DNA of 63,603 nucleotides, the filler included, from Intoshia linei (Eukaryota; Animalia; Orthonectida), in the NCBI GenBank assembly GCA_001642005.1. It is 5 parts of 5 records of this genome, joined end to end, with 100 filler letters (N's around TTAATTAATTAA, not from the genome) between each part and the next. Parts side by side here need not be neighbours in the genome. Positions count along the whole stretch, not along the records: positions 26,141 to 49,140 come from LWCA01000573.1; 4 more parts are not named here. One strand, written 5' to 3'. Shown piece after piece: positions 29,536-49,140 of the stretch. The position numbers and the translations under genes were made by a program. The stretch's first letter is position 1. Each line of letters begins with the position of its first letter. Below the pieces are notes generated by a model. It saw nothing but the letters and a program-made list of their open reading frames with translations, searched no databases and was not told the DNA's origin.

Positions 29536-31422
29536 TTACCCTCCATTGACAAAAAATGAGGCTAAAGAATCAATATCATGAACGGGTGCGTCAATTTCTC
29601 GGTTTGAAACAGATTGTAAATTGTAATTAATTTTTTTGTTTTGTTTATTGGGTTGATTTTCTTTAATATTGACATCATTGTCATTTTTTTGACATTCTTT
29701 CAAATATATTGAATCGTTTTTTACAGGTTTATAGTGTTCATCATCTATCTTTAATTTTAACTTAATTTCATCAATTGTATCGTTTTTTTCGTTGTTTTTA
29801 TTTCGAATACCATTTTGAAACAAATCTCCTTTTCTATATTGCTGAAGCATTAACCTTTCTGCATAAGACAAAAACGGTTTAGTGAAATTGATTTCAATTT
29901 GTTTTGGCGATGTGCATACTGATCGTTGTATCGGTTTTTCATTGCATGATACGTTTTTCTTTTTATTTAAATTAACTAATTATTAACATAAATGTAAATA
30001 ATATAAGAATATAAATAAAAAGAAAACGGGAAAACTAGCAAAATAAACAATTTTACAATTTGTTAATACGAAAATGACATAAAATTACCAGATTTATTTA
30101 AGTCATTTTGGTACATGACGTTGAATCCTATTTTTGTACATGAATCGGTATTAATACATGAGTCTGATTTATTATCAGGTGAACTATTTTTATTATCGAT
30201 TTTTTCATTTATTTTAGAATGATTCATATCAAATTTTACCTTTTTCTAAAAAAGGATTATTTCAAATGGTAAAAAATTTACTTGAACATTTAAAAAATTT
30301 TTAACATTAGGTGTCATTATTGATGTCCCACCTTTAAGAGCTAATAATTTGAATTTTTTTGGAGTTTTGAACATCTAAAATAATTAACATGTAAATAATA
30401 TTATTATAATCTTACTTATATATGCTTTGCAATATTTGTTTATCTGTGTGTGTTACCGTTTATTTCAATAACTACCAGTTTAGAATTTTATAAAGTCCAC
30501 ATTTTAATTACAGTTTTTTTCGAGGGTGTTAACAAAATAAATTTCATCTTTTAAAATTCACATCTTACAAGTCAAAAAGCCCAATTGTCCTATTTTTGAA
30601 AATCAAACGAGTTCGAGAATTTAACAAAATATACACTCTCACGGATTTTAAAATCATAAATTTAAATTTAAAAAAAATATATCTTCAGGGTCAAAACCCC
30701 AAATTACCCTTTTTTAAATGAAAACAGCCCTAGAATTTAAAAAAATTTCAATCTGAATAAGTGATGTCTTCACGGTCAAAAAAACATTTTAGTATCCATA
30801 TATTTTTTTTCCGAAATATTTTATTAAAACAAAAAATGTGAAATCATTAAATGTTCGAAAATTAAAAAAAAAATTATTCTGATAGAGCGTATTCCAGTTG
30901 ATATAAATACAAAATTTTAACCACAGAAATCTACTCTTCTCGGTGAAAAATAATTTTTAATATATTATCAATTAATATTTTTCAAATATTTCGAATTATC
31001 TAATATATCTTAATAATGTAAGTTATAATAAAAATTGAATATGTAAATATTGATCCTACAATTTTAAAAAAAATGTGCATTGAATATGGGTGAAAATCTA
31101 TATAATTAATTCCTTTCGAATTTTTTTCATTGCTACGCAATTTTTCATTTATTAACCCGTGTAGGGCTCTTATAGTATCACCATTAAAATATACTACATT
31201 TATGACACATTATTGTCTACCTTGAAGAGTTTTTGAGTGTCTAGTATTTCCGCGTTTTTATTTGAAAGGCAGGTTGATGATTTTTTTTTCATTTTTGTTT
31301 TTTTAATCTTATCAATGTTTTGCAATTTAAATAATTTTAAACGCTTTTCCATTTTCTTGGCATCTTTAGATAAGCGAATATTTTCATGTTTCACATTTGC
31401 CAAGTCTACACAAACGTTTTTC
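29536..31422 (-). CDS. ZBBX: ZBBX-like protein (exons 31221-31422, 30282-30374, 30089-30245, ~29536-29975); both ends uncertain
   Basis: In-frame GT-AG exon chain with four blocks collinear with ZBBX as I recall it: coiled coil KHENIRLSKDAKKMEKRLKLFK, KKFKLLALK, IEINFTKPFLSYAERLMLQQYRK (cf. [21 protein letters not shown]) and LQSVSNR...SLASFFV (cf. LQEIACR...GLERFFI). Confidence 0.6.
30410..31150 (+). mobile_element. Helitron family copy in ZBBX-like intron
   Basis: Starts A|TCTTACTTATA and is a reverse-complement match to ~45720-46546. Confidence 0.8.
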
Positions 31423-33439
31423 CTGTTAATTTAAACAATATAAAATGATTTAATTTGTATAGAAATGGTTCTCAACCTTGATTTGTCTCATTTAAACTTA
31501 TCTTAAATCTACGGTGAAATGAAAATTTAGGATATTATAGATGTACTTAGTTTAATTTTTTATTACGTTTATTTTTACTGATCGCCGACAAAATTAAAAA
31601 TTAGGTAACGATACCTGAAATAACCGATAGTAGCGTATTTTTTCTTTCATTATAAATTCATAACATTTTATTATTAAATCTGATTCATAATTCAAAATCA
31701 TATTCAACACCCCACAATAATTTTTTTTTCATATCTTTCATAAAATTAATAATGATTAATAAAACTCTGAAAAAAAAAATTCACAGGTATGATATAATTT
31801 TTGATTTAAATGTATAAAATTACTTTGAAAAATTCATTATTCACAATAGATTAAAATATTTACTGAGCATTTGTTAAAAATTGAGAATCCTATGTAACTA
31901 CATTATTTATTATTTGTTGATTTTGTTAAGATACATATTTAAGCATAACCGCTGCAATTTCAATAAATATAAATGAATATTACAGGTTTATAGATTTTTG
32001 AGATAATTTTAAAATGTAATACTTATAGTTAGTAAACTTGGTCAAATCTTTTATAATCATAAACTCTTTCTAATATGCCACTATTTAGGCATCAATGTAT
32101 GTCATTGTTTTTAAAATTTTACCACATTAGACAGAAAAAATCTCATTGTAATTTTCACATACCTAAAGAAGAAATAAAATTTTAGGACACAAGTTGATTT
32201 TTAAAATATTTTCAATCCTATTAATAAATGAAATATTAAATAACAATATATAATTTAACATAAACCATTCAATAAATTTATATTTAACCATGATTTTGAG
32301 GTAAAATGATATGTATAATCTTTAAAATTAAATTCTGATTCATTAATATTGAATAATAGTATAGTATATATTAGATTTAAAAATTATAAATGTACAATAA
32401 TGTATAATGCATATTTACATTATTTAAATTTACTAGTGTTACATTTACATTAATGTATTAATATGTAATATCTGTCAACTTAAAATTAGGATTTTTAGTT
32501 AAAGTTGGAATATATACCTATATTAAAATAGAAAATTGGAGTCAATACTATCAACAATGTTAATTATTATTGTCTGTGATTAATGAATAAAATTATAAAA
32601 ACAACAATTATTTTTAATGTCATTTTCTCTATAATTTATAATGCATTATAATATTTATAAGTAAGTAATATTACATATTATTTTTAAGTAATAGCTTCGT
32701 AGAATAAAATACTATACCATGTATTATAATCAAGTGTAGTTACTTTTCTGGTACTAGCAAATTTTTTTAAATAAATGAATGACTAATTTGTAAAATGTAA
32801 ACTAAATCCAATGACGTTTTTTAGTATCAAAAATTTTTAATATTTAGAATTAAGTACTCAGAAAAAGGGATTTTTACTTCATGGTTGATAAAATTTTGGT
32901 TTTTTATTTTGTGGTTGGATTAAGAGTTTTTTCTCGTAAGGTTTGGTAAAATTCGATTTTGTTCGGGGGTGGATTAAAAATTTTATTAATGGTGGGATAA
33001 AAGTAGGATTTTAGAAATAATAATTTAGCGGTCGTTTAGGCTTTAGGATAAAATCCCAACATCTGGCAACTCTGCAATAATGTATTTTACAAAAATAAAC
33101 ATTTTAATTTTGATGGTAATATAACCAAAAATGCTGGTAACACCTTTGATTATAATTATAATACATGATAATTATCACTGAATGAATTTAAATGATAGTG
33201 ATTTAAGATGATAATAATGGCTGAATATTACTTATATGAAAGGAAATGACCTGCAAATATAGGTTAAATGGAAAGAAAATCAAAATATTTTCATTTTATT
33301 GTTTATAACAAATTCCTCGTTAACGGAATGGCATTTTTTTCAGGCCAAATTTTTTGTTAAAGGAGAATTAGCCTGTTTGTTCTGAATTGTAATTTTAATG
33401 TTTTTGATAAAAAAAATTTATTACACAAGGATACAAGTT

Positions 33440-36400
33440 TTAAAATTTATTGGATAGAATGTAATTCGTTACATTCACCATTTTGCATTTTTCAGATATA
33501 ATTTTCAAAGCATCACGTTGTTTTTCCTTATCCACTTTATTACGCCAATAATTTATGGAATTGACAAACTGAGATACAAATTTATTAAAAATAATCATAA
33601 TTATAATTGATCAATGATAATAACAAAGAATACAATGTAGTTTCTTAAATGCCCAGAGCGGTGGTTTTGTATCTTTTTGGGTTTGAGAGCCTTTTAAATT
33701 TTTTTAAATTGGGTTATTTACTTTTACTCAACTTCTACTACATAATTTCGGTTCCATTTCCATTGAGTTATTTATTCATTTTCCGGTAGAAAAATTTGTA
33801 GAATACATTCAAAAATATTAATAGGTATTTAAATGTATAACTTAAAACTTATATCAAGAAATGAACCAATTTTATTTTTTTTATTGTATATAGTGTAGAC
33901 AAGCACGGCACAATACGACCCATTTTCATATTATAAATAATAAAAAGTAATTCAAGTAGTTGGATTTTATGAAATAAAATTAAAACATGAAATTATCAAT
34001 AATTTGAAATGTACTTTTTTTATAAAGAAATAAATAGATTTTCTGAATTTTCAGGGATTTAAATTCTGTCAACCATCCATCATTCTTTTATAAAACCACA
34101 ACTCCAGAGGATATTATTTATATTTAAGAAATATCAAGTTTAACGTATAATAGTTTAAGTAATAATTTAGAGTCAAAAAAATAAAAATACCCTATCATCG
34201 TTATTTTGACCTGCATTTGAAATATTTTTCATTTCTTTAGACGAAATTTCCATAAATCGTGCCATTTTTTTCCAATCATATGATCGCATTATTGGAATCA
34301 AATTTTTCACATCTCGACCAGTTATGCTTTTCTGTTCCACCTGTTTGTCAACTTCAATCTAAATTTAATTCACAAAAAATTATAATTTTTGTAATCAAAA
34401 TATAAAAAAAGAAATGCAGTGATAATACAAAATGTATTAAATTTATCGCGCCATAAATTTTTAAAAATCACAGGCAATATTTGAAAAATTTTTTATTTCT
34501 TTACAACTGTGTACTTTATTATTAGCGCCATTCATAATAACAACTACCATAACAGGTAATATTATATTTATAAACTATTATATCATAATTTATATAATTT
34601 ATATAATTTACATAATTTACAGTTAATGTTTTTATAAATTTCTTCATGACAAAATGATTTAAGTTAAATTTATATGAACATTAATCTTGTATCCCATTCA
34701 AATTAAATAAACTACAATAATGACCAAGAATTCAAAACACGTACGTAATAGAGTAAGTATATACAAATTATCATACATATGTGTATTTAGGAAATATGAC
34801 AAATGCACAAACTACTAATGAATCTAATATGAATGAAAAATGTAAAGTATTATTAGTAATTACTCATAATTTAGGAATACTAATTAAAATAATGTTGAAT
34901 AAATTTTAATAATGATTTACCTGTAATTTTTTAAAAAGTTTATTGGCCTCTAAGGCAATTCCAGGTGGTATAACTTCAAATTTAGTATATTTTTTTATAA
35001 TAGTTTGATCGATAGACTTACAAACTTCCAAATATTCATTCTTGTTTAGAACTATTTTTTAATTAATACAGAAAAATGAAAATGGCGCACAATGTCTACT
35101 GAATTGAGTAAATCTTTGGGCAATCAAGATTCAGATAAATGATACCACAAAATATGTTTTGATATACAATGTGTATTGTAAATACAGGTTAATTCCTCGT
35201 TAACGGAATAATTGGTCCTGAATTTTTTATAAAAAGGTTTACATTATAACAGTGGTTTGCGATTGGAGTCCAAAATTATATGCCTGGGGCCCGTGAGATT
35301 CAAATAAAATATAGAAACATTTTGATGAACTTTTTTTTATTTTTATAGGAGAATTTTTAATATTTATTACAGAGATTCTAGATGTTGATTATCCCAAATC
35401 ATAGACGACCGCTACAATATTATTTCAAAAATCCCATTTTTTCCCACCATTAAAATTTCAAGAAATTTCAAGCTCTCAGGGAAAATTTACTTTTACCGAT
35501 ATTTTTTAAAAAAATTTTATTTTACGAAACCTGATAAAAAAAAATCATTTTTTTCCAATATTTTTTTGAAAAATCCGATTTTACTAAATTTTATAAGCAA
35601 CAACTTGCTAATCCAAAACCCAAAATAAAAAATGAAATTTTAAGAAACCTAATGAAAAAAATCCTAAAAATGAAAAATCCAATTTTATCATTCTAAATAA
35701 AAAAATTATATGATGAAAAACATTTTATTTTTTAATCAAAGTTTTATATTTCATGTTTCCCTTGGAGTCCAAAAAAATAAATATTTTTAAATGGGGGTTC
35801 GTACACTATTTGAACTGGGAACCTGCATTAAAAAAATGAAAAAATTTTGATTTTCATTCAACTTAACCTATATTTACAGGTCATTGAAATTCAATAATTA
35901 ATTATCAACCATTATTATCATTAATCAAGAAAAAAATAAAATGTTTTCCACATCTAAAGCTTTTTATTTGAACCGAAAAAGCTTTATTAATTAAATTAAA
36001 TTATTAATTATGATGCTAGTCATTTTAAGTTAAAATTTAACGGAATTTTTGTACTTTAGAAAAATTCACAGTCCGATAATCAGGATTTTTTTCCGTTAAC
36101 ATTAGTGGAATTAGCTTATATTTAAATAGACAACATAAAACGAATAAACCAGTGAAAAAATTATTGCCCAAACAAATGAATTACTGTCATCACATTCGTG
36201 TGCTGCTTGATTGGTAAAAAGTTTTTTTTCACTCTAAAATTATTAAAATTATTTTATTTTTAAAATTTCCAACTTCAGTTTTTTTTGGGTACAAAACATT
36301 AACCATAACGCCTATTGATTTTTCATCGATAACTTTTGCATTATTCCAGAAATGAAATAAACCTTCCATAATCTGATCAGAATTAGAATTTTCCAGCCAA

Positions 36401-37198
36401 TAAAAAAAATTGCAAAATGTTGAAAAATAAACATTTCCATCTGGTGATTTTAGAGCTGTTAAAATCTAAATATAATTAATAATATTCAATATTTGAATAT
36501 TTTATACATTTTTTATGAATTTATGGTTTGCATATTTTTTATGAGTTTCCAATTTAATAAATCCATCTTTATTCACACCAAGTTGCTGGAAACGCAGCCA
36601 CAATCTCTCCACTTCTACAATTGCTACTAAATTTTTTATTATATTAATTCTCTAATAAATTAAAAAAATGGGATCACAAAATTGTTTTTAAAATTCTTTT
36701 CTCATATGCTAAAATAAAATTAAGTGGGAATAATTCACTTCAAATTAAAAGGTAATGTGAAATTACCGGTTGTGATAAAACAAGTTAAGAAACCACTACT
36801 TTAAAGGATTTGTAACAGTGAATATTAGCATTTTTAAGTTAGATTTTCCTATTGAATATATTTTTTTGGTATAATTAAAAATCTCCGCTTTCGGCATAGC
36901 TAGGTGCTGTCTGTACGTATTACATAACAGTCAACCTAGTAGTATATAATTATATAATGTAGAGTGGAGCGTTGATGAATTTTTTGGTTGTAAAGCTAAA
37001 TTTTTATAGCAAGTTTGAGATCTACTGAGATATCAAAAAAATATATTGCTAAAAAAAGGTCGGTAGACAAAATCAGTTTGGGAATCCCTGATATACATTA
37101 CATTAATTATATTTATGTATCCGTTTTTTTAAATCTTCCTTAATACCTTGACACGTAGTGTATTACAAAATGAATCTAAATACTTTGATATTTTGCGA
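33440..37198 (-). CDS. Calcineurin-B/CHP-like EF-hand protein with C-terminal Death domain (exons ~37167-37198, 36508-36623, 36274-36465, 36185-36233, 34921-35051, 34191-34358, 33440-33568); start exon unresolved
   Basis: Seven phase-compatible GT-AG exons give FSIVEVERLWLRFQQLGVNKDGFIK...SPDGNVYFSTFCNFF (CHP/CNB-like EF1-EF2), later ECDDILNKNEYLEVC, then YDWKKMARFMEISSKEMKNISNAGQNNDDRFVNSINYWRNKVDKEKQRDALKIISEKCKMVNVTNYIL (Death-domain pattern). None of this appears in the ORF track. Confidence 0.75.
36640..36938 (+). mobile_element. Helitron 3' end in intron of the EF-hand/Death-domain gene
   Basis: Same 3' consensus: ...tcggcatagctaggtgctgtctgtacgtattACATAACAGTCAACCTAG|T. Confidence 0.78.
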
Positions 37199-37652
37199 CT
37201 TTAAAGTTGCGATTTATGATATTATTAGAAACTTGTTATTATTGATTAGACAGTTGGAAATGTTTAATATTAACCGTGTTTAATTTTTATTTGAATTTAT
37301 GATGAGGGGGGGGTTTATTTGGAGCTTACCCGGCTTACTTAGTAAAAAAGAATGTTCAAATATCCACTGTAATTATTTTGTTTAAGAAAAAATGTGTAAG
37401 TAGATCATGGGGAAAGAAATTTTGTCACTATAAATCTTCTTCCGTATAGTATACTATTAGTATCACATGAATGTTTGATACATTGATTTTAAATTATACC
37501 CATAGTAATTTAAAATGATTTTAGTATCTAATAATTTGCTTGTCAAATAAATATTAATAAATAACTATAAAATAAATACTACAATAACCGAAATTTGGTA
37601 AATAAAAATAAATTACATTGAAAAACTAATAAAATAAAGTTGTCTAAACTAA

Positions 37653-38361
37653 ATGAACAAAGAACCATCTTCGAACATGGATGAGAAGAAACCTTTTGCA
37701 AACTACGTAAAATCACAAGTAAATGGAGAATTTAAAATGGAAAAAGACAAACAAGACAGTAACAACTGCAATTTTTGTCACCATTGTGGTGCCACGGTGT
37801 CTAGTTTGAGTAAACCTTGCGAAAACACAAAAACGACATGGTACGATGACGGAACATCGTCCACCTCTGTAATCAATAACCAATCTTGCCTTTTCGATGA
37901 CGCAAAAAACATAAAACCTGCAAATGATATCAAAGTGCCAAAAGGCAAAAACGGTAAACCCAATAAACAACCAATAGCCATTACCAAACTAAAAGAAAAC
38001 CAAGATATCAAAGAATGTCGAATATGCGAAGTATATCGAATAAAACGCATAAAAAACAACAACTCTGTTAGAAAATGTCGCAACAAGACAAAAGTGATTG
38101 ATCTAAAAAAGACTGAAATTTTAAAAAAACTATGCTCAGAAAAAAATGATTTTGAAATGCAATTAGACAAAGCCATTTCCGAAATGAAACGGTATTGGTA
38201 ATATATTAATATATTTAACCTATATTTTTAGAATGCATGAAATGTGTATTTCCTATGGGTACGATTTACCAAAAAACATTGTTACAGATATCGATACTTT
38301 GCTCAACGAATTCAATCCCAATCATAATGACCCTACTTACAACCCAAAATACGATAAATAA
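37653..38361 (+). CDS. C/EBP-family bZIP transcription factor (exons 37653-38191, 38232-38361)
   Basis: Basic region EVYRIKRIKNNNSVRKCRNKTK resembles C/EBP EYRxRRERNNIAVRKSRxKxK and is followed by a degenerate zipper. A 40-nt intron (38192-38231) extends the frame to ...MHEMCISYGYDLPKN...PKYDK*. Confidence 0.75.
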
Positions 38362-38536: not shown

Positions 38537-41518
38537 TTATGGATGTGTAAATTCAATGTCTTTTTTAGGTTCAAGTATTACAGCTTTCACGGGATTAGTA
38601 TTTTCACCTTGTGGATTATCAATGTTTATAGAGAGAGAATGTTTAAATTCCGGATACGTCGTTGAAATGGGAACAAATGTAGAAGAGGGAGAGAGAACGT
38701 TGTGTTTGACTTTAGGCATAGTACATGACGTGGTAGCTAGAGATGAATTTGATCGCATTCGTAAGGATTGAGTATTGTAAGGTTTATGAGTAGTTGAAAG
38801 TGAAGACCTTGTAATTGGAGACTCTCTCAATTTCATTCTTGTATCTTCATCCAAATCAATAGACGACTCACTTTCCGATAATTGTCTGTACAGTTGTTCG
38901 TTTCTCAAACATTCACAATTTAACTTGCGTTGTAATTTTGAATTTTCCTTTTCATATTTCATCATTATTTTTTCATTTTGATACCTAGAGTTGGCTAGAT
39001 CGTTTGATAAAGTTTTTACCTTTTTGATCAAAAGAGAAATTTGGTGCTTTAGCACTTTTATATGGTACTTTGGGTTTGACGCTTCTCCTTCATCTTTAGC
39101 AAGATGGTGTAAAACCGAAGATATTTCCAAATTTGTTGTACCACAACTATCGCCTTTAGAAGCTTCCAAAATGTTTACTTCTTCTTGTAGTATTTCTTCA
39201 TTGTCATGCTCAAATTGCATAGGGTTAATTAGCATTTTATTGTCCAGTTGATGTTGTAAAATACGCTTGTCGGTTTCCAGTTGGTCCAATTGTTTCCACA
39301 GCCGATTGACTAAAGATTCTTGTTCATTTTCTAAAGCATTTTCAAGTTCTCCTCTTTCAATCTTTTGTCTATTAATTGACGTCTGTTTCAAAAACATTTC
39401 ATGTTCCAATTTAGAAATTGTCTTTTCCATTTTTTCAATTTTATTAACTTGTTGATTTTCGATTGTTTTTTCTAATTCAATCTAAAGTTTCTGATAAATT
39501 GGTATACCGGTTTTTCCACCACTTTTAGTATCTTTTCAATTCAAATATACAAAGAGGTAGAAAATTTATATTTTTAAAATAACCTTTTCATTTCTCAATT
39601 GAGTGCATTGACGGTTTAATGTATTGGTCAAAAATTCTTCTTCCTAAATTCTTAAATGATGGAATAATAATTAATAAAATCCATTAATTTTCCTTGAGGG
39701 CTACACTTTAGTGAAGAGTCTATATCTAGAACATTATAGCCCATTAACCATCAAAATTAGTAATCTATATTTAAAATATGACATTCATCATTGAGCGGCG
39801 AATTCCAAAGTATGGCCTGACATTATTAAAATTACCATTTAAAAATCTAGATTACATATAATAATTAAAAGCTCATTTTACATGAAAAATATATTTATTG
39901 GAATTTGGTGGAATAGTCAATTATCTTAATCAATAATACTCAAAAAAATAAAAAGTAACACTTAAGATTTCCAAAAATTAATTAAAAAATACTCTGCAAT
40001 GTTAAAAATTTTAGGACAATTAACAAACGGAATGGAAATTGCTTTTTCCTAAGATTACATGGATTAATTTATTAATTAATGATTTATTTACCTTCTCGCA
40101 ATTTTTTGCTAGAGCTTCCTTTTCCTTTTTTAAATTGTGAATTTTTTTCAACAATGAGTTTGTTATAAATTCTTCCTCTGTTTCAGCGCGAGCCTAAATT
40201 ATCATTTTAACAAAAATAATAATAAAACAAATACATTTATGTTAATGACATAGTAATAATCATAATAATGTCCAATTTTTTATGAAAATTCCTTTTTCAT
40301 GTGGACATTTACATTTTGAAAACAAATGGTAATTTGGTTTTTGACCATGAAGGTGTGCGTCTCTGAGGATGAGATTTACTACAATGTTAATGATTTTAAA
40401 ATGCGGCCCAGAATATATATTTTTTAAAAATTTTAGGCTGATTTTATTTTTCAAAAAAAAGGGGAAATGTTTTTCATCCTGCAAGACTCAATTTCGGAAA
40501 ATGAAAAACATAATCATCACCCGTGAAAATTTTGAAAACGTACATTCAATTTTTATACAACAATTAAAACAGTGTTTCCCGATTCAAATAGTGTACGGAC
40601 CCCCATTTCAAAATAATTATTTTTTTGGACCTCAAAAAAAACATGAAATGTAAAAAATTTAAAAAAATATTTTCATGTTTTTTCTTTAAAGATTTAGTAA
40701 AATTGGATTAGGAAGTTGTTGCTCATAAGATTTGATAAAATCGTAAAAAAATTTTCAAAAAAATTTGGTAAAAGGGGATTTTTCTCTTAAAGGTTTAAAA
40801 TGGTATTTTTTATTACATTTTATTAATGGAATGAAATTGGGATTTTTGAAATAATAATGTACCGGTCATGTAGGCTTTGGGATAAATTTCAAACATCTGT
40901 CAAATCTGTAATAAATATTAAAAATTCTCCTATAACAATTAACAAAAGTTGATTAAAGTGGATAAGTTGAATAAAATACGGAAATAATTTTTTAACGTCC
41001 TAATGAAAAATGTACTGCTATAAAATTAAAAAAAATTTTTTTTTTGATATCTAGATCTATAAACTATATACATTTTCGTGGCCATGGTTCTCTAATATTC
41101 TCAAAATCTTCATGAACCTAATATTTTCCATAAACTCTCTAGTATCCATATGTACAATTTACACCTTTGACGATTCCTGTTGTACATAGTACCTAAGTAA
41201 TCCCATGAGTACATGAACATTCCTATTCCAAAAAAGTTTACATCTTGGAAAATATCAGTATTATATAGATAAAATAAAATGTAACTTAATTTACAATTTT
41301 TAATAAAAGTAATTTTACCTGCATAATAACATTTGATCGTTTAAGTTCAGAATTTTCGTTTCTAAAAAATAAATGTAAAAGTAAAATGAAAATTACCGTA
41401 AAGAAATATATTTCTGTTTATATTCATTTAATTGAATTTGCAACATTTCCATTTTAAGTCGATATGAGCAGGTTGAACCACAACAGCTTTCAACAGAACT
41501 AGAAGGTATATCTGCCAT
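38537..41518 (-). CDS. CCDC6: Coiled-coil domain-containing protein 6, multi-exon
   Basis: MAD start, NVIMQ|[18 protein letters not shown]...[48 protein letters not shown] and [17 protein letters not shown] are all characteristic CCDC6 motifs. Confidence 0.92.
40570..40960 (+). repeat. Abundant hAT-like MITE family (CAGTG.TTCCCGATTCAA.TAGTG...); other copies at ~8417-8760 (+), ~35250-35826 (-), fragments ~5570-5760, ~28350-28620, ~32830-33080
   Basis: Shared terminus and internal degenerate repeats such as ggtaaaattggatt and gtgggataaaagtgggattt. Confidence 0.7.
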
Positions 41519-42109: not shown

Positions 42110-45100
42110 ATGAGTTATGATTATGATAGTTTAGTTTCAACTGCACATTCATCGAATCCAGATGTATTTCACCCAAATATATACAACTTTAAGTAATTTT
42201 AATTTTTGACAATTTCTAAAATTAAAATAGACATTCATTGGGATATGATTGCAAAGGAAAGAAAAATTTGTGTATACTAGATGCTACTCATATTGGATAC
42301 ATTGCTGGGAATTATTTTATATCTCTAAATATCAAAACAAATGAAAAACTTTATATTCGATCCATGAGCGGACAGGGAATGTCATGTTTGGCTGTACTAT
42401 TTTCATTATTATATCATTTTAACATGTTCACATTTTCAAATAGATGAACCTAACACATCAAAACTTAGCCATTGGTGAAACCGGAGACATGCCAAATATC
42501 AATATTTTCAATCACACTGGTGGTAAAGACTTTAAATTGGTAAAACAACTTCATAGTGGCGCAATAAAAACCTATAGGTGCATGAATTTCAAGTAATGAA
42601 AATTTTGATTTTCAAAAAATTTACATTGTAAATTAGTTTGGAAGGAAATTTACTTGCTTCAGTCGGAGGAAATCCCGATTACATGTTGACTATATGGAAT
42701 TGGAAAGAAGAAATTATTATGCTTCGTTCTAAAGCCTTTTCACAAGATGTTTATAGAGTCAGTTTTTCCAGTGAATTGGATGGTCAATTAACTACATCTG
42801 GAATAAGTCATATAAAGTATGTTGTAAATACAGTAGTATCATTATAATAATAATATATAATTATATAGAAACATTTTAATATTGTTAATAGATTTTGGAA
42901 AATGGCATCCACATTTACTGGGTTAAAATTACAAGGAGAAGTTGGTAGATTTGGGAAAACGGAAATATCAGATATTGATGGCTATATAGAACTTCCAGAT
43001 GGAAAAGTATTGTCGGGATCAGAATGGGGTAATATGGTAATTTTTCTATTCAAATTATTGTAAAAACCTAACTTGATGGGAATTTTAAAATTTAAAAATT
43101 AAACATAATAAAAACAAGTATTCTTAATCCTACCGTCTGCAAACTTTGTAGTAAGATACCAAATATTGTTAGCTTATTTTTTAAAAATATTTAAAAGTTC
43201 AGCAAAAATAGAAAACGTTGTGCTGAGACCACAAAAAATTCAATTGGGAACAGAGGTGGAGACCATACCCCATTATATTCATTATTTAATTCATATGAAG
43301 AAAGTTTATTAAAAAGTTTAAAAATTTTTTAGATATTATGGGATGGAAGTTTGATAAAGGTTGAAATTTGTAGAAACGATAATAAATTTTGTCACAATGG
43401 AAAAATTATGCAGATACTTATGGATGAAGGAGAATTAATAACAATTGGTTCTGATGGATATATTAAGGTTTTTACTTTCTTTTGTGCTGTAGATTGGAAC
43501 ATTATTCAGTATAAAATATAAATCAGCATGTCCCATGGGATCACGGATTACAATAGTGAGTTTACGAAAATGTTGATATACTACTTTATATTACAATTGT
43601 ATATGTTGATTTAAATGTCAGCTTTCTAAAATATTGCTGCTAATTAAAAATTAGAGCATTCCTAGAAGGGTACCACTCACTGAATTTACTGTTATATTAG
43701 AATAATCTGTGCAAATTTGAATAGATTATAATAAATTTGATATAAAAAAAATTAGGGATAAGTTACAAAAATATTTTCAATTTGGGTATATTTACAGTAT
43801 GTTACTAAAAAGATGAAATATGGGTATATTTAGGAAGCCCTGATATGTAAAGTGTGCCATGTTTTCCAGTTTAACATGTTTTTTAGGTGTGGGACTTTGA
43901 AAAGATTGACAGTGCTGATGTATCGGATGGTTCTAGTTTTTTTCAAATGGAACCAATGAATGAAATGTTGGTCAATAAACATGCTCAAATTATGACGATT
44001 GAAAAATCGATTGATGAGTCATCGATTTGGTATGCTCAGGTAATATAAAATATGAAATAATGACAAACAATATACTATAGAATGTATAGTATACATTTTA
44101 AAAAATTTAATTATATATCAGTGATTCTCAATTGAGACGATATCTTTCACAAAGAGGTAATTTATCTTCTAGAAAGCGATTTTTTAATTTTATGATCACA
44201 ATTTATTTCATATTTACAAAAAAATTATAATTTTTGATATTACAATATTGTAATAGTAATTTACACAATTTGACATTGTGAAATTGTAACAATTGTTAAT
44301 TGTAAATTTCTATAAAATGTACATTTTATGAAATTATATAACAGTTGGAGACAACTACAGTAGTTTACATTAGTGAAATTAGAATTTGTTAATGTACGTT
44401 AATAGAAAATCCAAACATAGATATTGATGGTAGGAATTCTTAAAAATTCGTTATTCGATAATGGGGTTTTCCATTTCGATTGACTGTGTCAAAATTATGC
44501 ATTTTACATGCGATAAATTTATTTAATCCTAGAAAAAGTAAGGATAGACTGAAAAAAAGTAACTTCATGACAGCGATATGATTGGATGAAAATAATGTTT
44601 GATGAAATATTGGATGTTAGACGGGACATTTTTGAATTAAATTTTGACACGTAAAATCATGCACAAACATGTATTGGCAATGTCCATTTGACATGGAAAA
44701 CATACGGTCTAGACCGTACCTTACTAAAATATTCTTTTCTGAGTTTACTCATATTTTGGTATGCACCTGAGCGTAGTAGTTGAGAAACACTGATGCAAAA
44801 TATACATAATTTAAAAAATTGATGGGGAAGATGTGTTAATTTTTTGAATAAAATAGTTTAAAAGGGGACAACTGATTTATATGATCATCTAGGATAGTAA
44901 TGGAGGAATATGGAAGCTGGATTTGTCTTTTTCATTTACATCACTAGCTCCAGAAAAAATGTATTCTCATCACACGGGAATTGTAAAAGGGTGCTCTCCG
45001 TCGCCAAGTACTTATACCGTTGCAACCATTGGAGAAGATGGTAATTCAAAAATTTTTCATATCAATACAGTGGCTTTTCAATTCAATAATATTTATTTTA

Positions 45101-48100
45101 TATAGGTTCTCTTCGAGTTTATGACATATTAAATGGATCACTCATTGCAGAAACATTTTCTGCAAACAAAGGGACGAGTGTACTATGGATAGAAGAAAAT
45201 AGTGTAATTATTTTTAGACGAACTGTAGAATGATAACGTTACAAAAATATATAAAAACTAGGTTGACTGTTATGTACTACCTAAAAACAGCATTTAGCTC
45301 TGCCGAGGGCAAATTTTGACTCTACCAAAAAAATTTAACTTAAAAATCCTACTATTCACTATTATCAATCTCTTAAAGGAGTGGTTCCCAAACTTGTTTC
45401 AGGTGGAACCGTTATATCAAATTACTTTTTACTTTAAAGTGAATTATTCCATCTTAATTTTGTATTGTTAACATTTTCGTTAAGAATTTTAAAAACAATT
45501 GTTATCCCATTTATTAATTTATTAGACAGAATGTGTGTATAATATTAAAAATAAAGTAAAACCAGTCCAATCCTAAAAATTGTCATAAATAACATAAATT
45601 CCAGAAAAAATAAAATTTGTGAATGAAATTAAATGATATTAACAAAGTTGTTTTAGTTTGTTGTTGTAGTTTCTTATTTAAATAGCAATGTTTTTATAAA
45701 AATGTTTTGTAAATGAAACTTAAAAATTGCGTAGCAATGAAAAAAATTCCGAAGGAATAAATTATATAGATTTTCACCCATATGTCTTTATTGGAAATGT
45801 GTAGACATTCAATGCACATTTTTTTTGAAATTGTAGGATTAATATTTACATTTTCAATTTTTATTTAAATTGAAATATTTGAAAAATATTAGTTGATAAT
45901 ATATTAAAAATTATTGTCACCTGGAATGCGTAGATATCTGAGGTTGAAATTTTGTATTTATATCAACTGGAATAACCTTTATCAAAATATAGTTTTTTTT
46001 AATTTTCGGATGTTAATTATTTCACATTTTTTGTTAATAAAATATTTCGGAAAAAATTAATATATGAATACTAAAATGCTTTTTTGACCGTGAAGTCGTC
46101 ACTTATTCGGATTTGAATTTTTTATGTGTGTTAACAGGACCTGTACCACCTATAAATTTTTTTTTAAATTCTAGGGCTTTTTAATTGCTGTTTTCATTGA
46201 AAAATAAAGGGTAATTTGGGGTTTTGGGGTTTTGGCCTGAAGATATATTTTTTTAAATTTAAATTTATGATAATATTTATGATTTTTAAAATTCGTATCA
46301 GAGTATATATTTTTGTAAATTCTCGAACTCGTTTGATTTTCAAAAAAAAGACAATTGGGCTTTTTGACCCGTAAGATGTGAGTTTGTGAGGTTGAAATTT
46401 ATTTTGCTAATACCCCGTAAAACTGTAATTGAAATGTGGACTTTATGAAATTATAAGACTGGTAGTTGTTGAAATAAACGGTAACACACACACAAAAACC
46501 AATATTGTATAGCATTTTATATACAATGTATGTATGTAAGTAAGGATTTTCCAATACTAATAATTTGAAAAGTATAGTAAAAATCATTTTCATTTTTTAT
46601 TGCGCGGTAAGAGTACAGTGTATGTAATTTCTTTTGATATCTTTCTGTGTGTTCTACTTTTGCATAGTTCTGAAATGATGATATTGAGATATGTCAGGGA
46701 CCGATCATAAGAGCCGATAATATTAAATGTACTTAATGTTACAAATAATTATTCTACAGAATTAATATACCCCAGTGATTCCCAATTTGTCGGTATTTAC
46801 TTACCAGTGAGTAATTTGATATTTTTCATGGGTAATAGCGAAATTTGTTTTAGAAAATAGGAATTTTTTTATTTTTTTTGGTCAGTTGCACACTGTGCTT
46901 TGCACAGTAACGTATTATATAATTTTTCCTAAATGATATAATAATGTAATCATGTAATAAATGAACATCCTTTACTTGTATAAAATTGAATATCTGTGTG
47001 TGTATTATAATTTATTTAAAAAATTAAAAGTCGTATAATTAAAAAAACTAAATTCTAATACAATGTTTCCCAAGTGATATTTATATATAAGTATTATTTG
47101 CTAAAATTGAGACCTTCATCGTCAAAAACTAAATTTACCTTTTTTTATGAATAAAACCAACCCAAAAATATAAAAAAACATAAATCGTGGGATATTTACT
47201 AAAATCAACTTTTCTTAAAAAATTTCCAAAATCTGATAGTCACATATTCACGGTCAAAAAATCACTTTAATATTAATTTTTTTTATTTGGAAACTATATT
47301 CTTATTATCAAAAAAGTATAATTTTGTTTATACGTGAAAAAAATATAAATGGTGTTTATCTTATCTTAAACTAACATTTTGGAAAAGTCACAAAAAATTA
47401 AAAACACAAATTCTAAGTCAGTTTTTATAACGAGTAAGATATATTTCACTATCATAAATTTGCATCTTTACCGGCAAAAGCAAAATTTACTCCCATTACT
47501 GAAAAATAAAAATTTAAATATTCTTTCGACAATTTCAAAAAAAATCAGGAATTATTTTACTATTTTGTAAAATTAGTTTTTAATTTTAATTAAATTATTA
47601 AATATTCGATATGACTCTTATTCTAAAAACATGAGCAGCCAATATGAAGTTAAAAAAATATTGTTGGTAATATCAAAATAAGTACTATATATATAATATG
47701 GGTAATGTAGTAAAAAAAGTTTGGAAACACTGTCATACATGTAGATCAGTGATGGTAAAATGTGTGTTTCCGTGTTAAAAATACACACTTGACAAAATCT
47801 ACGCCCTAAAAATTACAAATAATTAATAAGGATAAACTCATCAAGAAATAGATTCCATGAGTAAACAAGGTTCACTTGCGTATTATTTAAAATTTAAATC
47901 TACAAGATTTGTTTAATAGAAATTTTCCTTTCCATTGAAAAATTTGGTGAAAAATGTTGCTCATTTTCTCACCTATAGAATTTTAGTAATAAATTTAGAT
48001 TTCGTTTCACTTAAAGGGCTTTTTTGGAGTAACAATTTTTTTATTAGAAAACACACCAGAAAATAATTTTCGAATAAAATGTCTAAAATTAACACACAAA

Positions 48101-49140
48101 TTTGATTTGATTGCCATCACTGATATAGATGTTTTATATTTTACAATTTTTAGAATAAACTACAGTTGTCATCCTATAAGGTCCTTACGATCGGCTTTCC
48201 AGGTCCCGCTTGATTATTCATATAATATTTTTTACGTATGTTGTATATTTTGACATATAAATTTAGATATTTAGTGAAAACTGTATAGCTAGTGGATATT
48301 CTGATGGTATATTAAGGTTTTTCACTTTGGACATTGGAAAAATAGACCCAAATAAAAGACTTTCAGAACATCACACAATGAAATATGCATTAAAGTTGAT
48401 TCATATTTGCAAACCGCATACAAGTGATATTGAGTATATTGCAACATTTTCTAAAAAATCAAATGGAAAAACATATATGGTGACATCATCAAAAGATAAA
48501 ACAATATTTCTATTTGAAATTGCAGAAAAAAAGTTGATACCGATAGGTTTCATAAACACTGAATCTGTAGTGACATTTGTAGATTGGAAAAATGACAAAA
48601 TTTTGGCAAGTTGTAAAGATGGAAGAGTATTAAAAATAGATGATATTAAATTTAGTGAAATTCACATCAAAGATACATTTTGTATAGATAAATGGTGTTC
48701 AAAAACGGTACATACATTCACAAGTATAAAATCCAAAGTAGAACATGCCTCTCTGCTTGAAAAAAAGGAAAAAGAAAATCTGGAACAAAGGAAAATAAAA
48801 AAAAAAGAATTGCAACGTAAAAGAGATTTAGGAGTAGAAATTGAAGACGAAGAAATCCAAAGCGAGTCAGAATCGATAAATGAATGGCGAGAATATATTC
48901 CTGCTGAACCTTCGTCCGTTTTATTTGGAATATGGGATTCTAATTCGTTTGATGAAGGCTACTATATTTCAATGGATAAATATGACGGTGGTTACTTATA
49001 CAAAAAATCATTTAATGCCCAGTATAACAAGAAGAATTTAATGAATAAAAACGTTTATTCTGGTTCAGAACCTATCGAAATTTTTCAAGCCACAAATGTG
49101 TCAATTTCTTGTTTTAATTTTGTCAACAACTTTGTGGTAT
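42110..49140 (+). CDS. CFAP44: Cilia- and flagella-associated protein 44 (WDR52), 5' part, truncated at contig end
   Basis: Spliced exons give HSLGYDC...[89 protein letters not shown] and [14 protein letters not shown] long exon from ~48268 ends in [13 protein letters not shown]. Confidence 0.95.
45258..46546 (-). mobile_element. Complete non-autonomous Helitron (~1.29 kb) in a CFAP44 intron
   Basis: The minus strand reads A|TCCTTACTTA...ACATAACAGTCAACCTAG|T: 5' TC, 3' CTAG, inserted between A and T, no TSD. The body is highly similar to 1-685 and to the reverse complement of 30410-31150. Confidence 0.85.
47747..48122. mobile_element. hAT-type MITE (376 bp) in CFAP44 intron
   Basis: TIR CAGTGATGG(T/C)AA. 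8-bp TSD ATGTAGAT / ATATAGAT (7/8). Confidence 0.8.

Follow-up and report, generated by a model that had tools for sequence, protein, structure and literature searches.

A split gene of Intoshia linei predicted to join a calcineurin-B-like pseudo-EF-hand domain to a Death domain

We analysed a split gene on the minus strand of the 23,000-bp contig LWCA01000573.1 from the orthonectid Intoshia linei. This piece (21-32% G+C) occupies positions 26141-49140 of the window, the whole stretch of 63,603 nucleotides (nt) along which all coordinates are counted. The gene's predicted product is most likely a protein of about 260-270 amino acids (aa) with two domains, and we give a probability of about 0.68 to the reading that these are a calcineurin-B-like pseudo-EF-hand domain and, fused to it, a Death domain. 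The evidence for such an adaptor is weak but convergent, and the adaptor is accordingly a probable rather than a certain product. The two kinds of domain are familiar and their combination is not: searching the literature for an EF-hand plus Death-domain architecture turned up nothing relevant and no characterised protein so built, as had been anticipated in a first-pass annotation of this DNA.

Exon structure of the gene

Six exons on the minus strand, running from 36626 to 33440, form one frame with AG acceptors, GT donors and compatible phases (0, 0, 1, 0, 0). They are numbered after the seven-exon scheme of the first-pass annotation, in which the confirmed exons are 2-7 and the disputed one is exon 1, and their predicted contents are as follows:

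Exon 2, 36508..36626 (36626 or 36623 as the 5' edge), minus strand: candidate EF-hand 1, entering helix and degenerate loop GVNKDGFIKLET
Exon 3, 36274..36465, minus strand: 64-codon open frame with putative EF-hand 2 and the EF-hand 3 region
Exon 4, 36185..36233, minus strand: putative EF-hand 4, from its entering helix to midway through the loop; ends in phase 1
Exon 5, 34921..35051, minus strand: remainder of the putative EF-hand 4, C-terminal helix of the N-domain, and linker
Exon 6, 34191..34358, minus strand: linker and predicted Death-domain helices 1-3, including the motif DWKKMARFMEIS
Exon 7, 33440..33568, minus strand: predicted second half of the Death domain; terminates at TAA 33442-33440

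Exons 2-7 translate to the peptides that had been quoted for them, and of the seven GT-AG exons first proposed these six are upheld by their phases, borders, peptides and codon bias, with only exon 1 failing. Three predicted junctions (36185 to 35051, 34921 to 34358 and 34191 to 33568) proved exact in their coordinates, GT-AG at their borders and fitting in phase. The introns on either side of exon 3 measure 42 nt and 40 nt and contain about 10% G+C, against 26-35% in the exons. I. linei, a strongly reduced parasite among the spiralians whose sequences evolve fast, has short introns, 57 bp at the median (PMC6543705), a norm that the 40-42-nt introns fit, and this agreement supports the exon model.

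The composition of the exons points the same way. At codon position 1, GC averages 0.39 across the exons (0.31-0.56 per exon) against 0.21 in long introns, and the purine share averages 0.66 (0.59-0.73 per exon) against about 0.49 in introns; the position bias of all six exons resembles that of the coding open reading frames (ORFs) of the neighbouring CCDC6 and WD40 genes. If stops occur at 0.078 per codon, six such frames would all be open by chance with a joint probability of about 7e-10. The same six exons make up residues 2-253 of the GenBank protein OAF67797.1 (A3Q56_04489), a 740-aa entry titled "hypothetical protein A3Q56_04489, partial [Intoshia linei]", and exon 6, searched alone against 1.84 billion representative proteins, matches this entry at 100% identity. 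An independent automatic gene finder thus picked them too, and the earlier description of the gene as hidden does not hold, even though the public entry is mis-modelled. Judged by these sequence features, the locus is a real protein-coding split gene of I. linei.

The two predicted domains

The N-terminal half is probably a pseudo-EF-hand domain of the calcineurin-B/CHP type, the likeness that the first reading of the locus had proposed. All 14 of the 14 PDB matches of exon 2 (38 aa) are EF-hand proteins, and the best of them is calcineurin B (5b8i_B, E 0.049), in an alignment that spans just 22 residues. There, residues 19-40 of 5b8i_B, its EF1, align with residues 5-26 of the I. linei protein, which places the two in an equal N-terminal register, and both share the motif EV.RLW.RF..L...K.G.I. 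In the ESM Atlas, every named feature neighbour of residues 1-165 is an EF-hand cluster with a score of 0.88-0.90, where scores below about 0.9-0.95 are leads only, come without alignments, and are in a range that shuffled proteins attain (0.9 in 4-10% of cases). The Atlas model of these residues, which is of low confidence overall, gives template modelling (TM) scores of 0.53-0.69 over 133-160 residues to GCAP1, KChIP, CIB and the NOX5 EF domain, the nearest neighbours by predicted structure; likeness in sequence to these proteins is confined to loop-like motifs, and the calcium ligands are missing in I. linei. The structural alignments to EF-hand domains take in exon 3 and extend to residues 157-164, inside exon 5, and so support the junction across the 1133-nt intron.

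The calcium-binding loops are degenerate, in line with the earlier description. Loop 1, placed from the tool alignment, is G18..T29 and has Gly and Thr at positions 1 and 12; loop 2, placed by eye, is L46..T57, its positions 1 and 12 being Leu and Thr; and loops 3 and 4, also placed by eye, are about two residues short. Both canonical ligands (Asp at position 1 and Glu at position 12) are kept in none of the four loops, and calcium binding or sensing therefore appears unlikely. A Ca2+-sensing or a pseudo-EF-hand adaptor had been offered as the function of the protein; the pseudo-EF-hand form is now favoured, and the calcium-sensing form loses ground for want of ligands.

A different N-terminal half, of the FADD type with a death effector domain (DED), was prompted by Death-domain helices that look FADD-like by eye and was rejected. 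It has no Pfam match to DED or Dredd_N, and it is also countered by the 165-aa length of the N-terminal half, by the EF-hand-only matches of exon 2 and by the EF-hand neighbours in the Atlas. Single-exon searches of Pfam and the PDB with exons 3, 5, 6 and 7 yielded no informative match, and those to DUF1869, to a PQQ-propeller and to CCT-theta were set aside as noise.

The C-terminal half is likely to be a Death domain, as first proposed. The reference for this comparison was LOC105848128 of Hydra vulgaris, a protein with three Pfam Death domains that itself matches Pfam Death at 1.4e-39. In the search of 1.84e9 proteins, exon 6 alone matches it at E 1.5e-5; the other library matches of exon 6 (three proteins) are artefacts of low complexity or HEAT repeats. 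BLASTP aligns residues 179-229 of OAF67797.1 with one Hydra repeat, the nearest Death domain in sequence, across 51 residues and at 37% identity, and the alignment spans the exon 6/7 junction. When exon 6 is scored with a profile built from the three Hydra repeats, it reaches 21.1 bits, whereas the maximum among 1000 shuffles is 8.8, so that 0 of the 1000 reach the observed score. The Pfam Death profile (PF00531) gives a match in register across the same junction, with residues 192-236 on profile positions 16-60, and it stays below the curated cut-off (14.8 against 22.6 bits, E 0.033), so that this check bears out the register and not the threshold. As predicted from sequence, then, the first half of the Death domain is well supported and the second half by register only. 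The Hydra protein differs in being a tandem Death-domain protein without an EF-hand-like part. One alignment of OAF67797.1 with LOC105848128 and another protein misplaced the Death repeats on the EF-hand half and was discarded.

A possible counterpart of the whole product comes from the Atlas. Residues 1-262 have a single close feature match, an unnamed 269-aa chordate cluster (score 0.92, 170/256 features shared; the next match scores 0.75), whose members are titled "uncharacterized protein isoform X2" and carry Pfam Death in 97% of 62 cases; its N-terminal part superposes on residues 1-164 with a TM of 0.59. In layout and length the cluster is like the I. linei product, which argues, as a lead, for a genuine fusion that predates the orthonectids. 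The cluster is known from the Atlas listing alone, so its homology also counts as a lead, and the library-wide search with exon 6 (1.84e9 proteins) did not list it. The suggestion that unannotated homologues may exist fits this lead, and at that strength.

Gene ends and rival explanations

At the 5' end, the exon 1 first proposed (37198..37147, minus strand) is ruled out as a coding start exon, for it lacks an ATG and is out of phase; of its frames, the sole one in phase with exon 2 meets a TAA, beyond which just 5 codons are open. Between 37652 and 36627 a single phase-1 exon with an ATG start is possible, ATGG at 37503-37500, which is also the start used by the GenBank model:

Putative start micro-exon, 37500..37503, minus strand: ATG plus G, followed by a GT donor

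Read from this doubtful 4-nt exon, the modelled N-terminus would be Met-Val, with no sign of a Met-Gly myristoylation start. At a distance of about 150 nt from the micro-exon, and head to head with the EF-hand/Death gene, stands an annotated 222-aa gene without a family (37653-38361, plus strand), for which only sub-threshold bZIP_2 and Pellino_RING matches were obtained. One inverted dispersed repeat pair (36711-36940 / 45257-45466) has its first copy between the micro-exon and exon 2.

The natural end of the gene is probably the TAA at 33440. The GenBank model bypasses this stop (33442-33440), uses a donor at 33473 instead, and continues into the following parts:

Downstream exon of OAF67797.1, 31889-31863, minus strand: 27 nt
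Downstream exons of OAF67797.1, 31424-31218, 29976-29539 and 29101-28979, minus strand: K/N-rich, low-complexity
Last part of OAF67797.1, 26292-26735, minus strand: Ty3/gypsy-type reverse-transcriptase fragment at the contig end

The last of these matches Pfam RVT_1 and, in the PDB, the Ty3 reverse transcriptase (E 1.7e-7). OAF67797.1 is a chimeric prediction, over-extended 3' into unrelated exons and a retrotransposon fragment, and A3Q56_04489 should be trimmed to about 260-270 codons. The ending at the TAA retains a C-terminal stretch that can be matched by eye to the final helix in the Death domains of the Hydra protein, and AATAAA motifs lie at 33451-33446 and 33422-33417.

Two further genes lie on the piece. 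A CCDC6 (H4) homologue (38537-41518, minus strand) has as its last exon a 297-codon ORF that matches Pfam DUF2046 at 2e-27, and a WD40 beta-propeller gene (42110-49140, plus strand; MABP1/WDR62-type families on record) is truncated by the end of the piece. A second inverted dispersed repeat family (30422-31150 / 45717-46515) falls in a downstream "intron" of the GenBank model and in the range of the WD40 gene.

Several observations weigh against a pseudo-EF-hand/Death fusion, and they are taken here with the explanations that they would favour. The rival that survives best, and is nonetheless unlikely, holds that the model is mis-joined or covers two separate genes, with exons 2-5 encoding an EF-hand-like protein of about 170 aa on its own and exons 6-7 belonging to another transcript or representing relics. 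The EF-hand-like exons are interlinked by introns of typical length, whereas the predicted junctions to exons 5, 6 and 7, which join the halves, cross unusually long introns (1133, 562 and 622 nt against the 57-bp median); read-through of the exon 5 donor meets a stop after 4 codons; and the public model is demonstrably a chimera in its downstream part. Exon 6, however, is unable to start a protein, since in-frame stops lie just upstream and no ATG occurs before the middle of helix 1, so that it requires an upstream phase-0 exon, which exon 5 supplies. The phases are compatible, and the longest of the introns in question is swollen by a repeat that accounts for much of its length:

Dispersed repeat, 35318-35921, unstranded: within the exon 4-5 intron of 1133 nt

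Copies of this repeat lie at 40576-40960 (in a CCDC6 intron) and at 33208-33300 (just downstream of the gene), with 82-89% identity. Without exon 5, moreover, the EF-hand globule of the structural alignments would be incomplete, and the best Atlas neighbour of the whole product has a matching two-part layout and length. The fusion in a single gene is therefore preferred to two genes.

Slightly less probable again is that the protein is real and its domains have been over-read, one or both halves being simply helical and resembling an EF-hand or Death domain by chance in a fast-evolving, AT-rich genome. Every family match lies under the curated cut-offs, and no Pfam EF-hand family was found at E up to 10 with the single exons or OAF67797.1. 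Exons 3 and 5 alone gave no relevant sequence matches in Pfam or the PDB, exon 7 alone gave no significant match in the PDB, Pfam or Hydra-profile searches, and the exon 2 match to calcineurin B is as short and the Atlas scores as open to chance as noted above. AlphaFold2, run on the single sequence of OAF67797.1 without an alignment, gave a mean predicted local distance difference test (pLDDT) score of 34 and confirms neither fold; the helices that it places at 179-190, 194-200, 205-214, 220-232 and 235-252 are untrustworthy. On the Death side, chance resemblance is opposed by the agreement of the library-wide E-value, the profile-versus-shuffle test and the in-register Pfam alignment, and on the EF side by the uniformly EF-hand PDB matches of exon 2, the calcineurin B EF1 position, the length of about 165 aa and TM values of up to 0.69. 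We retain the reading of both halves as domains on these grounds.

The last rival, a decaying pseudogene left by a former adaptor that was interrupted by repeats and lacks a proper start, is very improbable. The sole start candidate, the 4-nt exon 870 nt upstream, resembles a gene-finder's expedient, and a convincing exon with an ATG is lacking; repeats are present on the upstream side of exon 2 (36711-36940) and within the exon 4-5 intron; and the one relative that sequence searches recovered, a Death-domain protein, is distant. Word searches with exon 3, with residues 1-262 of OAF67797.1 and with Hydra LOC105848128 found no relatives and no orthologue, and those with the 740-aa query could not reach 269-aa proteins. 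Against decay, the six exons are open with intact splice signals and have kept their codon-position bias, and the repeats are located in introns, with none in exons.

Comparison systems and proposed role

With calcineurin B (CNB) and CHP1-3, the N-terminal half of the I. linei protein shares a domain of about 165 aa, four predicted helix-loop-helix units and the same N-terminal position of EF1. It differs from them in giving no Pfam EF-hand match, in showing no Met-Gly start at its doubtful modelled N-terminus, in having four degenerate loops and in the probable Death domain that follows. CHP also contains non-binding EF-hands, and to our knowledge CNB and CHP are stand-alone proteins. On the Death-domain side, FADD, CRADD, EDARADD and insect IMD are proteins of about 200-270 aa that combine a C-terminal Death domain with an N-terminal recruiting module, and the I. 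linei product is similar to them in size and in its C-terminal Death-domain layout. Helices 2-6 of its Death domain presumably resemble those of FADD, a likeness drawn by eye only. Its N-terminal module, in contrast, is neither a DED nor a CARD, its neighbours being EF-hand proteins, and OAF67797.1 has no Pfam DED or CARD match.

The proposed mechanism is modelled on the roles that both classes of domain have elsewhere. Residues of about 1-165 (exons 2-5) would fold as one compact globule with four EF-hands, of the calcineurin-B / CHP / KChIP type, with the canonical calcium ligands lost in all four loops, and after a linker of about 12 residues, residues of about 178-262 (exons 6-7) would form the Death domain. 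Compact four-EF-hand proteins, as a class, hold a target helix in a hydrophobic groove. By analogy, the N-domain may clamp an amphipathic helix of a partner protein without needing calcium, and the Death domain may recruit other Death-domain proteins by homotypic assembly; the adaptor would in this way bring Death-domain signalling to whatever the pseudo-EF-hand domain holds.

More tentatively, and at somewhat less than even odds, the gene may be the orthonectid member of an unnamed family of adaptors of about 270 aa, present in protostomes and chordates, each with a calcineurin-B-like pseudo-EF-hand clamp and, fused to it, a Death domain. If true, this would be an unstudied route for bringing Death-domain signalling to a helix-bearing partner, for example the tail of a membrane transporter or channel. 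A Death-domain adaptor is characterised by the recruits of its second module, be it a DED, CARD, TIR or kinase, and a calcium-blind module of the calcineurin-B type in this position would wire Death-domain signalling in a new way. That such a module persists in an animal genome among the most reduced of all, and that chordates possibly have a counterpart, would speak for a conserved function.

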